Shown here in pieces: positions 250 through 38,030 of a stretch of 46,588 nucleotides of DNA. Numbering within the stretch: the first letter of the stretch is position 1; each line of letters begins with the position of its first letter. Source of the DNA: Octopus bimaculoides (taxonomy: Eukaryota); assembly GCF_001194135.2 (NCBI RefSeq), contig NC_069001.1:11311910-11358497 (forward strand), written 5' to 3'. A program made the position numbers and the translations under genes. The notes under the pieces were generated by a model. It was given only the letters and a program-made list of their open reading frames with translations. It was not told the DNA's origin and ran no database searches.

Positions 250-822
250 ATATATATATATATATATATATATATATATATATAAATGTATATCCATGTA
301 TGTATGTATGTGTATTTGATTAAGTCTTACAGAAATTACACTTTGGATATGTGGCATAGAGATAAAATCAATGAATAATTAAAATTAATATAATTTGGTG
401 ATATTGTTTGTAGTATCTGACTATCATATTCTGTTGGAAAACATTATCTACAATTAAGGTGTTTGACAATTGTATTAATGCATGTTTGCCTCAGTGTGTA
501 ATATTTGTTCATGTTTTGTATAGTCTTTGATGTTAAAGCTATACTGCATTGCATAGAGAAGCCATCGGCGCTGTACATTCCCTAGAGTGTATATATACAT
601 ATACGAATGTATGCGGGGAAACAAATATGTACGTATGCATTTGTGTATGCAAGTGAATATGTACGTATATGGTTACAACATTTGAGCTTTAGTGTATATG
701 TATGTGTATATATATATATATATATATATATATATATATATTGATAGAAATGGTAAGACAACTAAAGAATGAAAGAGGAATTTATCTGTAAATATAATAT
801 GTGACAATTATTCGGTAGCCAT

Positions 823-883
823 GATAAAGCTCCGAGTTTCGGATGTCGGGGCGGAAACCCACGACGACATCTCTTCCGTTATC
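823..883 (-). ncRNA. Hammerhead ribozyme relic (mirror copy, core mutated)
   Basis: Minus strand reads GATAA-CGGAAGA-GATGTCG...CGACATC-C-GAAA-CTC-G-GAG-C-T-TTATC. Stem II is a perfect 7 bp, but the core carries U4>G and U16.1>C changes. Confidence 0.55.
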
Positions 884-916
884 GGGCCATCAAAAATATG
901 GCCTTTTTGATGGCAC

Positions 917-977
917 GATAACTGAAGAGATGCTGGCGTGGGTTTCCGGCCCGACATCCGAAACTCGGAGTTTTATC
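917..977 (+). ncRNA. Type I minimal hammerhead ribozyme motif
   Basis: Stem I GATAA/TTATC, core CTGAAGA (922-928), stem II GATG...CATC, C-GAAA (959-963), stem III ACTC-G-GAGT, NUH triplet GUU. Confidence 0.65.
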
Positions 978-1457
978 ATAGCTACCGAAAATTAGTCACA
1001 TATACATATATATATATATATATATATATATATATATATGTACACACACACTCACATATGCACACATATCAATGCACACGCGCAACTGAAGTTGCTCCGA
1101 AACATCGAAGATCTCACTTTAAAACTACAAGAACGCGAGTTCCAAACTACTTTGTGGATGAAATGTCATTTTCTATACATTTGATATGGAAATTATGTAC
1201 CTGCATTGAAACTGGGATGTCGGAGATTGTGAGGAAGCCCACAGGATTAATCATTCTTCTAATCCAAGCGTATCATCAGATATTCTGCCGCATTTACTGT
1301 GCGAATTACCTATGTCGAGTCTTCAAGAGTATACCAGTGGGTGCAGGGAAAGTTTATTTGGCTTGTCGAACGAATAAATCTTTATCGACATAAGATAGAG
1401 AACAGCCACAAGGATGCACATGGATTTATACACAAATATATGCATACATATATTAGC

Positions 1458-1603
1458 GCAGGAATGGCTTGCCTATCAACTACATGGTTCCGGGTTCAGT
1501 TCCACTGCGTGACAACTTGGATAAGTGTCTTCTAATATAGCCTCGGACCAACCAAAGCCTTGTGAGTGGATTTGGTAGACGGAAGCTAAGAGAAGCCCAT
1601 CGT
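1458..1603 (+). mobile_element. tRNA-derived SINE family 1, 5' half
   Basis: B-box-like GGTTCAGTTCC and body gccttgtgagtggatttggtagacggaa shared with many copies in the window; ends in (AT)n/(GT)n. Confidence 0.85.
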
Positions 1604-33802: not shown

Positions 33803-36607
33803 TAATTTCGTCTTTACAGTGTTATTTCCCATCGATTTCTGTCTTTATCCCTCTAATCGTTTTCTCTGTCTCTCACACACGCACTCCTATACACTTCACT
33901 CGACAAGTCTTCTTTGCTTTCTGCTCTTGACCTTTCCTCCATCTAACGTTGAAGGTGCATTTAAATATATAGCACATTTTTAGAAACCACATTTTGTTGT
34001 TCCTTTTTATTTAACATTTGATAAGTTGTCATCGCACCTTCATCAGATATGTAGCCAACCATATCGTATTTCATTGATTCGACCTCAATTGGTCAAATGG
34101 CTGTCATTCGTTTATAGCCGACGAGAATGCATCGTAGCTGATCGCTCCTATGTTCAAAACTCCGAGGGCTATAATGACAACTTACTGATTGTCCTAAATT
34201 ATACATATATACATTATTTTTTTTATGTATATATATATATATATATATATATATATATATATATATATATATATATATATATNNNNNNNNNNNNNNNNNN
34301 NNNNNNNNNNNNNNNNNNNNNNNNNNNNNNNNNNNNNNNNNNNNNNNNNNNNNNNNNNNNNNNNNNNNNNNNNNNNNNNNNNNNNNNNNNNNNNNNNNNN
34401 NNNNNNNNNNNNNNNNNNNNNNNNNNNNNNNNNNNNNNNNNNNNNNNNNNNNNNNNNNNNNNNNNNNNNNNNNNNNNNNNNNNNNNNNNNNNNNNNNNNN
34501 NNNNNNNNNNNNNNNNNNNNNNNNNNNNNNNNNNNNNNNNNNNNNNNNNNNNNNNNNNNNNNNNNNNNNNNNNNNNNNNNNNNNNNNNNNNNNNNNNNNN
34601 NNNNNNNNNNNNNNNNNNNNNNNNNNNNNNNNNNNNNNNNNNNNNNNNNNNNNNNNNNNNNNNNNNNNNNNNNNNNNNNNNNNNNNNNNNNNNNNNNNNN
34701 NNNNNNNNNNNNNNNNNNNNNNNNNNNNNNNNNNNNNNNNNNNNNNNNNNNNNNNNNNNNNNNNNNNNNNNNNNNNNNNNNNNNNNNNNNNNNNNNNNNN
34801 NNNNNNNNNNNNNNNNNNNNNNNNNNNNNNNNNNNNNNNNNNNNNNNNNNNNNNNNNNNNNNNNNNNNNNNNNNNNNNNNNNNNNNNNNNNNNNNNNNNN
34901 NNNNNNNNNNNNNNNNNNNNNNNNNNNNNNNNNNNNNNNNNNNNNNNNNNNNNNNNNNNNNNNNNNNNNNNNNNNNNNNNNNNNNNNNNNNNNNNNNNNN
35001 NNNNNNNNNNNNNNNNNNNNNNNNNNNNNNNNNNNNNNNNNNNNNNNNNNNNNNNNNNNNNNNNNNNNNNNNNNNNNNNNNNNNNNNNNNNNNNNNNNNN
35101 NNNNNNNNNNNNNNNNNNNNNNNNNNNNNNNATATATATATATCCATATATATATATATATACACGTACACACGCACACACACATGCTTATATATAATAA
35201 TCTACGTGTGTCTGTGGTGGTGTGTTTGGTGTGCTAGCGTCACATCATACCTTTGTATATATGAGTGTGGATTTCTCTTGACATATATGTATTAGTACAA
35301 ACAACACATAAATACGTATTCCTCTTAGTATGTTCAGATATGCTTACATTTATGTGGTCTGTTGGCCTCGTCAATGTTGTCACATTTTCTAATATTATGG
35401 AGTGTTTGTGAAATGTAATTTCCGTTAGTCTGGCGCCAACATACACATACTTTCTGAATTACGATGAGCTTTCTTCAAACAAATGGCTTCTCACTTGGCT
35501 TGTTCGGGAAACAGATTTGGCTTAATATTGTTCTTGTTTTCACTATTCTGAAGACTGTTGTTATGGACCTTGTCGCTGATTTTTCTCTTTTATATAAATA
35601 CATACATAAAAAAAAACGACAATTGTTATTGTTGATATTTTTTATGGTGACCTTACATATTGTCATTCTCCTTGTTTACATACCATACCGATGTGTTACG
35701 AATTTTCATACGACTATATGTGTGCCTGTATGTGTGTGTGTGTGTCTTTGTGTGTTTATGTGTGTGTATGAAAATATGTACCTGAGTACATACATATGTG
35801 TTTGTATTCATATATATTTTCTATGTGAAATGATTTGAAGCACATACACAAACAGAGATATACACATCACACAGACATAGATACATTCAGGTAATGGTGT
35901 TTGTATGTTCAATGTCTCAGGCATACATCTACGCATACTTACATATATATTGAGGAATACATCCATACATACATAAATACATACATGTGTGTGTGTATTT
36001 GTGTTTTGTACCATATTTTCGTAAATTGATTAAGCTGTTTATGGAGTCTCGAAGAGGGTTCCCCCACCACCACCACCAATGTTTTCACGTTTCAACCAAG
36101 GTGAAAATCGAGTATAGGACAGCTAGAAGTAATAGCTTCATCAAAGGACAGCTGGGACAAATTGTAGTCCATGTAGACAGTAGCAACGTAGAAGCATTCA
36201 TGTTGAAACTTTGTCCAATAATTGACCACACGAGTCCCCCAACCACATGCATATTGATTTTTGCATATGAATATATATGTTCATTCGTATATATTTCTAA
36301 ATATATATATATATATATATATATATATATATATATATATATATATACATATATACATGCATATATACATGCATAATTAGGATAAAGTCATTAATTAATG
36401 ATTTATCACTGGCTAGCGTACAAAAAACCCCCACCTAAGTTAAATTAATATTAAAAGTATAATTATAAATAAAGGTGGGACAGAGCCTGTACGCTTGAAA
36501 TAGACGTCAAACAACTACAAACATTTAAGTTACCATTGCGTTCATCAAAAGGCTGTATGCAAGGAAAATGGACAAAAAAAAACGAATTTATAAGAATTTT
36601 GTGTACA

Positions 36608-36671
36608 ACCATATATCTTAAGATTTCATGTTTTGCAGTATCAAAATTGCTTTACAATCTTCAGTAGTGTA
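36608..36671 (-). ncRNA. Hammerhead mirror copy in the left arm of element D
   Basis: CTGAAGA core, GAAA and the ATCTTAAGAT-A palindrome are all intact. Stem I has two mismatches. Confidence 0.65.
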
Positions 36672-37730
36672 CACCGACCGTAAATAAATGAGAAATACAT
36701 ATACATACCCATAGGACATATACTCGTACAAATACGAGTATATACATATATTTCACACATATATACGAAAACCCCATCGTTCTTTTCAGCCATGTGTGTA
36801 TTTACTCAGAATAATCCTGCAGCAAATATGTTTATGGAGTGAATAAATATATATTTATACATAATTAGGATAAAGTCATTAATTAATGATTTATCAGTGG
36901 CCAGTGTACAATAAATCCATATAGGTTAAATTAATATTTAAAGTATAATTCTAAATATGTAATTATAAGTAAGGGCGCTAGAGGGACAGCACCTGTACGT
37001 TTGAAATGGACGTGAATAAATATATATTTAAACATAATTAGGATACAGTTATTAACGTACACTGGCCACTGGTAAATCATTAATTAATGATTTTATTCTA
37101 ATTATGTATAAATATATATTTATTCATTCCATGAACATATTTACTGCAGTATTATTGTGAGTGAAGACCCACATGGCTGAATTGGGCGATTCGGGTTTTA
37201 CTTCGTGTATATAAAAACATATATGTATATATATATATATATATATATATATATATATATATATNNNNNNNNNNNNNNNNNNNNNNNNNNNNNNNNNNNN
37301 NNNNNNNNNNNNNNNNNNNNNNNNNNNNNNNNNNNNNNNNNNNNNNNNNNNNNNNNNNNNNNNNNNNNNNNNNNNNNNNNNNNNNNNNNNNNNNNNNNNN
37401 NNNNNNNNNNNNNNNNNNNNNNNNNNNNNNNNNNNNNNNNNNNNNNNNNNNNNNNNNNNNNNNNNNNNNNNNNNNNNNNNNNNNNNNNNNNNNNNNNNNN
37501 NNNNNNNNNNNNNNNNNNNNNNNNNNNNNNNNNNNNNNNNNNNNNNNNNNNNNNNNNNNNNNNNNNNNNNNNNNNNNNNNNNNNNNNNNNNNNNNNNNNN
37601 NNNNNNNNNNNNNNNNNNNNNNNNNNNNNNNNNNNNNNNNNNNNNNNNNNNNNNNNTATATATATATATATATATATATATATATTCCTCTGGGTGTGTA
37701 TATGTATTTCTTATTTATGTATTGTCGGTG

Positions 37731-37795
37731 TACCCTACTGAAGATTGTAAAGCAGTTTTGATGTTGCAAAGCATGAAATCTTAAGATATAGGGTA
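37731..37795 (+). ncRNA. Type I minimal hammerhead ribozyme with palindromic, loop-less stem III
   Basis: TACCCTA-CTGAAGA (37738-37744)-[30-nt stem II region]-GAA-ATCTTAAGAT-A|TAGGGTA. Stem I is a perfect 7 bp, stem III is a 10-nt palindrome, and the triplet is AUA. Confidence 0.8.
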
Positions 37796-38030
37796 TTCCA
37801 CAATATTTATATAAATCCTTTTTTGTTTTTTGTCCATTTTTCTCGCATACAGTCTTGTGATGAACGGAGTATTAACTCTAAATTGTTTGTAGTCGTTTGA
37901 CGTCTATTTCAAGCGTGCACGCTCTGTCCCTCAAGGGCCTATATTTACAAATTATATATCTATAATCATACTTTAAATATATATACATACGTACGTACAT
38001 GCATACACACACACACACACACATATATAT

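Follow-up and report, generated by a model that had tools for sequence, protein, structure and literature searches.

Insertions of Penelope-like elements (PLEs) are strongly 5'-truncated and partially tandem, with a truncated copy standing before a longer one in the arrangement known as a pseudo long terminal repeat (pseudo-LTR, or pLTR); they may also carry an inverted 5'-truncated copy abutting the 5' end and a tail of 30-40 bp at one end only, they are biased towards microsatellites, (TA)n in several clades, and the pLTRs of canonical PLEs contain hammerhead ribozymes (Craig et al. 2021, PMC8557442). The mechanism by which PLEs integrate is regarded in the literature as an open question (PMC8557442). 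Metazoan non-LTR retrozymes, for their part, are units of 150-450 nt with low GC content and one type I hammerhead (Cervera and de la Pena 2020, PMC7229834), and they have been argued to be non-autonomous PLE derivatives on the grounds of co-occurrence and pLTR similarity (Li, Clavereau and Pollet 2026, bioRxiv 10.64898/2026.07.22.740005). Here we analyse a stretch of 46,588 nt from Octopus bimaculoides (contig NC_069001.1, positions 11,311,910 to 11,358,497; hereafter the window) and four loci within it, E1 (742-1003), E2 (11698-12472), E3 (24832-25472) and E4 (36372-37980), which a preliminary description had presented as head-to-head inverted, hammerhead-bearing elements. Our analysis indicates that they are probably old insertions of short non-coding hammerhead-bearing retroelements copied by the reverse transcriptase (RT) and GIY-YIG machinery of PLEs, that is, non-autonomous PLE derivatives of the non-LTR retrozyme type.

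The inverted dimers are real at all four loci and lie where they had been placed. Self-comparison recovers diverged arms of 100-480 nt that match each other at 70-89% identity (blastn E 1e-60 to 1e-130). The arms of E1, 797-896 and 904-1003, are 89% identical and are separated by a spacer of 7 nt. In E2 the interval 11694-12429 equals its own reverse complement at 74% (blastn E 8e-130), in E3 the interval 24899-25473 is self-reverse-complementary at 70% (blastn E 2e-83), and in E4 the interval 36440-36750 matches 37657-37976 at 80% while 36718-37252 is self-palindromic at 74%. The polarity holds as well: wherever a hammerhead core is present, it lies on the minus strand in the left arm and on the plus strand in the right arm, and the nested copies described below, which have a common outer end and different inner ends, back this polarity independently. 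The 3' ends of both arms face outward at all four loci, and each of the four has an inverted 5'-truncated copy beside a 5' end. The (TA)n-rich flanks are equally clear, since (TA)3 or longer occurs within 20 nt of seven of the eight outer ends, compared with 9.2% of random positions. As a control we took the window's remaining interspersed repeats, roughly 30 copies, and none of them forms such a local head-to-head dimer. The sense-strand substitution spectrum between the arms (A/G 36 versus C/T 31) was inspected for the A/G bias of an ADAR-like signature, and none was found there.

The internal anatomy of E2 and E4 reveals a short unit that repeats. The left arm of E2 (11698-12024, minus strand) consists of a unit at 11698-12003 and a linker to an upstream fragment; this central fragment (12025-12091, minus), a 5'-truncated copy of the 3' part of the unit, is 67 nt long and stands head-to-tail upstream of the left unit as a pseudo-LTR-like partial tandem. 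The right copy (12092-12472, plus) starts inside the linker and extends about 60 nt beyond the 3' end of the left copy, taking in the linker and the first 11 nt of a further unit (GCTACTTTGCT). Because it reaches into the next unit, the template must have been longer than one unit, with a unit of about 340 nt. The two opposite copies both read linker, ~300-nt unit, linker and start of the next unit. E4 is richer still. On the minus strand it has a full unit of about 490 nt (36372-36860), whose 3' end ...CCTAATTATG lies at 36372, then an internally deleted unit (36860-37010) and a 24-nt 3'-terminal fragment (37030-37055). On the plus strand it has an array (37056-37980) made of a 50-nt 3'-terminal fragment (37056-37106), a linker and a unit that is 3'-truncated at ...AAATAT. 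The same sequence CCTAATTATG thus ends four copies, of 24 nt, 50 nt, ~150 nt and ~490 nt, and a linker of the form T(A/T)TAAATATATATTTATTCA is common to three head-to-tail junctions, each of which joins a 3' end to the start of a unit. One assembly gap (37265-37656) falls in the plus-strand unit, within an internal (TA)n tract, so that this unit is known from the two sides of the gap, both collinear with the ungapped left unit, and the stretch between them is missing sequence.

E3 and E1 show the outer and inner ends of the copies in other ways. The left copy of E3 (24839-25091, minus) has a full 3' end (...TTTTACTCA) and is 5'-truncated inside a hammerhead relic. A central fragment (25089-25173, plus) consists of the 3'-terminal 85 nt, has the same ...TTTTACTCA end, and stands head-to-tail upstream of the right copy; at the head-to-head junction it overlaps the left copy by 3 nt. 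The right copy of E3 (25174-25473, plus) is without the last ~60 nt and ends in ...CTATAT, followed by (TG)n. In E1 the left copy occupies 742-896 (sense strand minus), of which 797-896 is homologous to the right arm and 742-796 is a 55-nt 3' tail missing from that arm, and the right copy (904-1003, plus) ends in ...CACAT, followed by (TA)n.

Taken across the loci, these structures modify the simple dimer of the preliminary description, in which two inverted arms were correctly seen and the internal tandem fragments of E2, E3 and E4 were missed. The centres of these three loci hold short 5'-truncated head-to-tail copies, so that partial head-to-tail tandems of the pseudo-LTR kind are present in E2, E3 and E4 and not in E1. 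The opposite arrays of E2, E3 and E4 begin at different positions of the unit, and these unequal inner ends imply that two independent 5' ends meet at the centre, which is therefore no fixed hairpin. At the outer ends every locus has a one-sided 3' tail, of 55 nt in E1, ~60 nt in E2, ~60 nt in E3 and ~75 nt in E4. In E1, E3 and E4 the shorter arm halts at ...ATAT where the longer arm goes on with TA-rich sequence. The arms of a fifth, small palindrome at 13047-13146 are about 45 nt long and match at 82%. TA-rich DNA borders it on the left, it contains no hammerhead core, and it may be either a very short insertion of the inverted PLE type or a miniature inverted-repeat transposable element (MITE).

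How far do the hammerheads hold? We used a relaxed type I descriptor, which demands a helix I of at least 5 bp, a helix II of at least 3 bp (one bulge or mismatch allowed), a helix III of at least 3 bp and a UH cleavage dinucleotide. It matches the window at exactly three places, the right arm of E1, the left arm of E2 and the right arm of E4, with 0.013 matches expected per shuffled window, and on this count of matches we take the motif to be real in these three families. The E1 match (917-977, plus), which is the best preserved motif of that element, has stem I GATAA/TTATC, core CUGAAGA, stem III ACU-CGG-AGU and cleavage dinucleotide UU, with a stem II of 8 bp that contains one mismatch and an extra C ahead of GAAA. 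The E2 match (11851-11899, minus) has stem I TCGCGA/TCGCGA, stem II GCGC/GCUC, the GAAA, stem III CUG-AGU-CAG and cleavage dinucleotide UC; its core is CUGAGGA with an extra U after A9, and stem II has a C.U mismatch. The E4 match (37730-37796, plus), the best of its locus, has a stem I of 8 bp, core CUGAAGA, stem III AUC-UUAA-GAU, cleavage dinucleotide UA and a U.U at the base of stem II.

The claim that all four elements bear a hammerhead in each arm goes further than our findings: the relaxed matches stand in one arm each of E1, E2 and E4, the partner arms are decayed, and E3 has a relic. The decayed partners are E1 left (823-883, minus; core CGGAAGA, C at position 16.1), E2 right (12216-12264, plus; stem I broken) and E4 left (36606-36672, minus; core intact, stem I broken). 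The core elements CUGANGA...GAAA...UH follow each other in order in E1 right and in both arms of E2 and E4. This order fails in E1 left, in E3 right, which has no U4, and in E3 left, which is truncated, and CUGANGA is found in neither arm of E3. Ten matches to the loose pattern CUGANGA-N(4-60)-GAAA are present in the window, compared with 3.5 +/- 1.9 in dinucleotide shuffles; six of the ten fall in E1, E2 and E4, two of these being overlapping core readings in the right arm of E2, and the matches at 15921, 15975, 30108 and 32632, which have no stems or repeats, were set aside as chance. Identity between arms is 88-90% inside the motif and 78-86% outside it, figures that are uninformative because both arms are dead copies. 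On folding, E4 alone does better than its shuffles (z = -2.5). As judged from their present sequence, all the hammerhead copies appear decayed, and we claim activity for none of them.

The four elements had also been described as unrelated families that share no obvious sequence, and for two of them this does not stand. By blastn and alignment E2 and E3 are homologous: they are collinear on the same strand over their 3' halves (blastn E 1.8e-5 and 3.5e-4), and their 3' termini, ...AACTAGCTACTTTGCT and ...AACTAGCTGTTTTACTCA, are alike. The right copy of E3 has a hammerhead relic (25261-25309, plus) at the position homologous to the E2 hammerhead, with core CGAGGA, U4 missing, and because of this homology the polarity of E3 is independently fixed. 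The relic reads GCAG, CGAGGA, C GGG AAGUUA CCC A, GAAA, CCA UUCGACUAU UGG, UA, CUGC. The relic in the left copy (25049-25091, minus) has AAAG in place of GAAA and is truncated within the core. A MAFFT alignment of the hammerhead segments of E2 and E3 is not structure-aware, and we used an explicit check of the pairing instead. At the hammerhead position both elements pair in all three helices although the helix sequences differ, and both retain GAGGA, GAAA and UH. These paired helices suggest that the hammerhead fold was under constraint during the divergence of both families, and they are the best evidence for it.

Compared with described PLE insertions, the E loci are alike in their common 3' ends, 5' truncation, pseudo-LTR, inverted copy, one-sided extension and (TA)n, and in a hammerhead that lies in the repeated terminal region on the sense strand. 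They differ in having no RT/GIY-YIG open reading frame (ORF) and in units of only ~340-490 nt. They differ also in helix III, which is a real hairpin of 3-4 bp in the E families and takes the 1-bp A-NN-U minimal form in the hammerhead of the autonomous octopus PLE. With the retrozymes they have in common non-coding units of a few hundred nt (~340 nt in E2, ~490 nt in E4), a GC content of 29-45%, one type I hammerhead in each unit, head-to-tail repetition and occurrence alongside PLEs, on which both are proposed to depend. An active hammerhead from an axolotl retrozyme is reported to share with E4 the U.U mismatch at the base of helix II. In contrast to the tandem arrays of retrozymes, which range from dimers to multimers, the E loci have partial tandems only, with 1.2-2.2 units per orientation and no array, and they are dominated by a head-to-head inversion in a (TA)n target that is described neither in PMC7229834 nor in bioRxiv 10.64898/2026.07.22.740005. 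Unlike those of described retrozymes, the E hammerheads are irregular and decayed, and the E loci are known from DNA sequence alone. A further parallel is offered by derivatives of Chlamys PLEs, such as MRC1 of Chlamydomonas (Craig et al. 2021), which are likewise short, non-coding, pLTR-forming, multicopy head-to-tail and dependent on PLEs. These derivatives show 3'-end similarity to identified autonomous partners and are mostly without hammerheads, whereas E1-E4 show no such similarity to the one PLE family sampled here.

An autonomous PLE has left its own trace in the window. At 8613-9620 on the minus strand lies a 5'-truncated and frameshifted remnant of an endonuclease-positive (EN+) PLE, with an RT thumb and, at 9030-9065 (minus), a GIY-YIG motif with internal cysteines, SIPCSCGRLYKG; it ends in (CA)n. 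The identification rests on homologues and motifs, Pfam having failed to recognise the fragmentary translation, and the best named homologue of a retroelement protein fragment from the window is XP_036358999 of Octopus sinensis. The 3' region of the remnant contains the 3' half of a hammerhead (8657-8687, minus), the CUGAUGA (5') half having been lost by deletion between two ACCTG repeats. In chromosome DNA of O. sinensis (L001), to which the repeats of the window are 80-92% identical, a copy of the PLE keeps the hammerhead (cacCUGAUGAaagcugg...cagccGAAAcguuGUGU, 10942-10973) and has a 43-nt inverted 3'-terminal fragment beside its truncated 5' end. The PLE of a second species (ENA ERZ21867824, L002) is accompanied by 223 nt of its 3' region in inverted orientation, and the hammerheads lie on the minus strand at left and on the plus strand at right. 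A complete PLE of 768 aa (L003) assembles as a circle, i.e., in tandem, with a hammerhead between the 3' region and the ORF. The preliminary description had left open that the architecture of E1-E4 might be undescribed; published PLE insertions (PMC8557442) and the autonomous PLEs of L001 and L002 show the same layout, cephalopods included.

Two further observations concern this PLE family. In ERZ21867824, PLE copies occur in head-to-head inverted pairs at 87-92% identity (L002 9165-9387 with 11368-11580; L006 8158-8707 with 10130-10688), and there is an 863-nt self-palindrome nearby (L005 12182-13044). Upstream of the hammerhead, the 3' region of the family contains a tRNA-like patch (GTAGTGGTTNAGAG ... 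GTTCGATTCC) that is conserved between species (window 8688-8729, minus; L001 7440-7510 and 10860-10900; L003 ~2660-2740); ARAGORN called no tRNA in this patch.

Are the E loci separate elements or only pieces of ordinary PLEs? No ORF and no similarity to PLE proteins is found in any arm of E1-E4, and since they have no PLE RT/GIY-YIG ORF they are at most non-autonomous. In E2 and E4 the short unit closes on itself in independent copies, and these are therefore short derivatives and not randomly truncated autonomous PLEs. Non-autonomy, which had been proposed for all four, is thus supported for E2 and E4, whose short unit repeats head-to-tail without an ORF, probable for E3, and possible for E1, which has arms of only 100 nt. 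The most serious competing explanation takes all four as heavily 5'-truncated copies of ordinary autonomous PLEs, represented by terminal or pLTR pieces, with no separate non-autonomous families. Strong 5' truncation is typical of PLE insertions (PMC8557442), the inverted fragment of the O. sinensis PLE is only 43 nt long, and E1 offers no argument for a short unit. What makes this explanation improbable is that the opposite copies of E2 both run from linker through unit and linker into the next unit, that three junctions of E4 join a 3' end to the same start with a whole unit of ~490 nt, and that the arms show no PLE protein similarity and no likeness to the available autonomous PLE.

The palindromic form and the TA-rich flanks could also be read as the marks of DNA transposons, namely MITEs or foldback elements with long terminal inverted repeats and insertion at TA as in the Tc1/mariner type. 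A mariner-like transposase remnant is present in the window (7520-8403, minus; a weak Pfam Transposase_1 match, broken by a gap at 7999-8351), and E1 is a symmetric hairpin. Target-site duplications are unreadable within microsatellites. We nevertheless consider this reading very unlikely, as one arm reaches 55-75 nt further out than the other in E1, E3 and E4, leaving no matched termini, as nested 3'-terminal tandem fragments stand at the centres and the inner ends are unequal, as bona fide PLEs show the same layout, and as the sense strand of the hammerhead always agrees with the polarity of truncation. The preliminary view that these are retroelement insertions with outward 3' ends, akin to PLEs and metazoan retrozymes, is borne out by architecture and motifs.

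A different possibility separates the palindromes from integration: single insertions may later have been made palindromic by template switching or fold-back repair at unstable (TA)n. In O. sinensis (L001 17130-17301), 44 nt of a SINE (short interspersed element) are duplicated in inverted orientation on the other side of a central (TA)n, which means that inverted duplication near (TA)n also occurs for repeats other than PLEs. The (TA)n of E1-E3, however, flanks the dimer and is absent from its centre; the arms end at the termini of the element and not in host sequence; this account would predict neither tandem fragments nor inner ends that are unequal; and the layout is found in three or four hammerhead families and in none of the ~30 other repeat copies. 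We give this account little chance. That the palindromes are artefacts of a gapped draft assembly is scarcely credible, for although the window has 13 gaps, with one inside E4, and PLE structures disturb short-read assemblies (Craig et al., PMC8557442), the arms are only 70-89% identical and carry indels, and E1, E2 and E3 are free of gaps.

Several observations weigh against the reading of E1-E4 as non-autonomous, retrozyme-like PLE derivatives. The first group concerns the ribozyme. A strict hammerhead descriptor has no match in the window (the irregularities are the extra C in E1, the extra U and C.U mismatch in E2 and the U.U in E4); every candidate has an irregular junction of stem II and core; and minimum-free-energy folds do not favour the hammerhead fold. 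Rfam at its gathering score finds no hammerhead in the window, and a per-element scan of E1 finds none in that element. The sole sub-threshold Rfam hammerhead match is that of E2 left to Hammerhead_HH9, at 24 bits versus 52 (E 0.0018 in a 771-nt search). The silence of Rfam counts little for variants of the PLE type, as the complete PLE L003 has a conserved hammerhead that Rfam likewise fails to detect. The second group concerns the insertions. E1 is symmetric, with arms of 100 and 100 nt around its 7-nt spacer in a hairpin of 207 bp, and it is without an internal tandem fragment, so for this locus a snap-back or hairpin origin fits equally well as two cDNAs. The tails of 55-75 nt in the E loci exceed the 30-40 bp quoted for PLEs, the linker of E4, being rich in TA, may be a remnant of the target microsatellite and not belong to the unit, and the PLE remnant of the window itself sits in (CA)n and not in (TA)n. 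The third group concerns relatives. The 3' ends of E1-E4 show no similarity to the PLE of the window or to L001-L006, which sample one PLE family, and for this reason we name no partner PLE. Further copies of E1-E4 were found neither in the rest of the window nor in the ~87 kb of L001-L006, of which only L001 (20.7 kb) is from Octopus, nor in metagenomes of the Joint Genome Institute (JGI) searched with two exact patterns; with no second genomic copy, family status, copy number and the consensus 5' end are putative, as is the very large population proposed in the preliminary description.

How could such structures arise from the integration of a PLE-type RNA? The GIY-YIG endonuclease would nick a (TA)n tract, and because (TA)n is self-complementary both broken strands would offer the same 3' primer. 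Each primer could pair with UA-rich sequence at the 3' end, or close to it, of an element RNA in multimeric or circular form, and two cDNAs running in opposite directions would result. Where reverse transcription reached the 5' end of one template and jumped to the 3' end of another, partial tandems would arise, and the two cDNAs would finally be joined head-to-head at whatever 5' point each had reached, as the 3-nt overlap at the E3 junction may illustrate. An arm would be left without a tail when its priming took place at a UA-rich patch within the RNA and not at the true 3' end. The hammerhead would cut multimeric transcripts into units, as is proposed for PLEs and retrozymes; linear self-cleaved monomers are presumably not the templates, because the ends of the insertions do not coincide with hammerhead cleavage sites. 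A model of this kind, with two cDNAs primed from both ends of one break, would fit the unequal inner ends of E2, E3 and E4.

A related scheme is the twin priming of L1, which Ostertag and Kazazian reportedly set out in 2001, and in which two cDNAs from both strands of one break are said to be joined internally to give an inverted structure. Twin priming is said to copy two different parts of one RNA, leaving an inversion without duplication. At the E loci, in contrast, both arms carry the same 3'-terminal sequence, and two templates or a multimeric or circular template are therefore needed. Whether the tandem and inverted structure of PLEs in general can be read as symmetric two-sided target-primed reverse transcription on self-complementary (TA)n is a suggestion that we put forward tentatively, as a possible account rather than the expected one.

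The loci lie in AT-rich eukaryotic DNA (GC content ~0.18-0.41 per 2 kb across the window) in which microsatellites of the (TA)n and (CA)n kinds abound and interspersed repeats are numerous. About 10 copies belong to a long SINE that contains a microsatellite (e.g. 11292-11691 and 33430-33805), and a repeat of ~200-230 nt occurs in short direct tandem arrays and dispersed copies (28402-29057, 41285-41740, 43584-44195 and others). An open frame at 2-202 (plus), which runs off the start of the window, encodes two C2H2 zinc fingers (zf-C2H2, Pfam E 8.5e-11) and may be an exon or part of a retroelement. At 38789-39200 (plus) lies the C-terminal remnant of a reverse transcriptase of the long interspersed element (LINE) type (…LRKILGITYRDRVTNEVIL…RRLRMVGHILR…), which has few database relatives. 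Over the whole window, Rfam at its E-value threshold returned only microsatellite look-alikes of microRNA families. Sub-threshold matches to mir-297, mir-466, mir-3149 and others, on (TG)n/(TA)n and on the E1 hairpin (e.g. 8549-8619, 30411-30486, and 826-975 in E1), were rejected as microRNA genes and attributed to composition and hairpin artefacts.

What is new here is modest: cephalopod retrozyme-like units with the full PLE insertion signature, the covariation between E2 and E3, and the ends of short arms at internal TA-rich patches. The dependence on PLEs would be visible in the anatomy of a single insertion, through its inverted copy, partial tandem, one-sided tail and (TA)n target. If the two-sided mechanism is true, the loci would be the first structural rather than correlative evidence that PLE machinery inserts retrozyme-like RNAs. 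For annotation, it suggests that such loci should be masked as PLE-derived repeats and not treated as hairpin RNA genes. A side possibility is that head-to-head dimers, if present in thousands, would encode long hairpin RNAs in a lineage with heavy A-to-I editing. More generally, if the proposed mechanism is true, these short octopus elements would be a compact natural record of a PLE integration intermediate, and since their small units leave every junction readable, their study genome-wide could clarify how PLEs build inverted and tandem structures.

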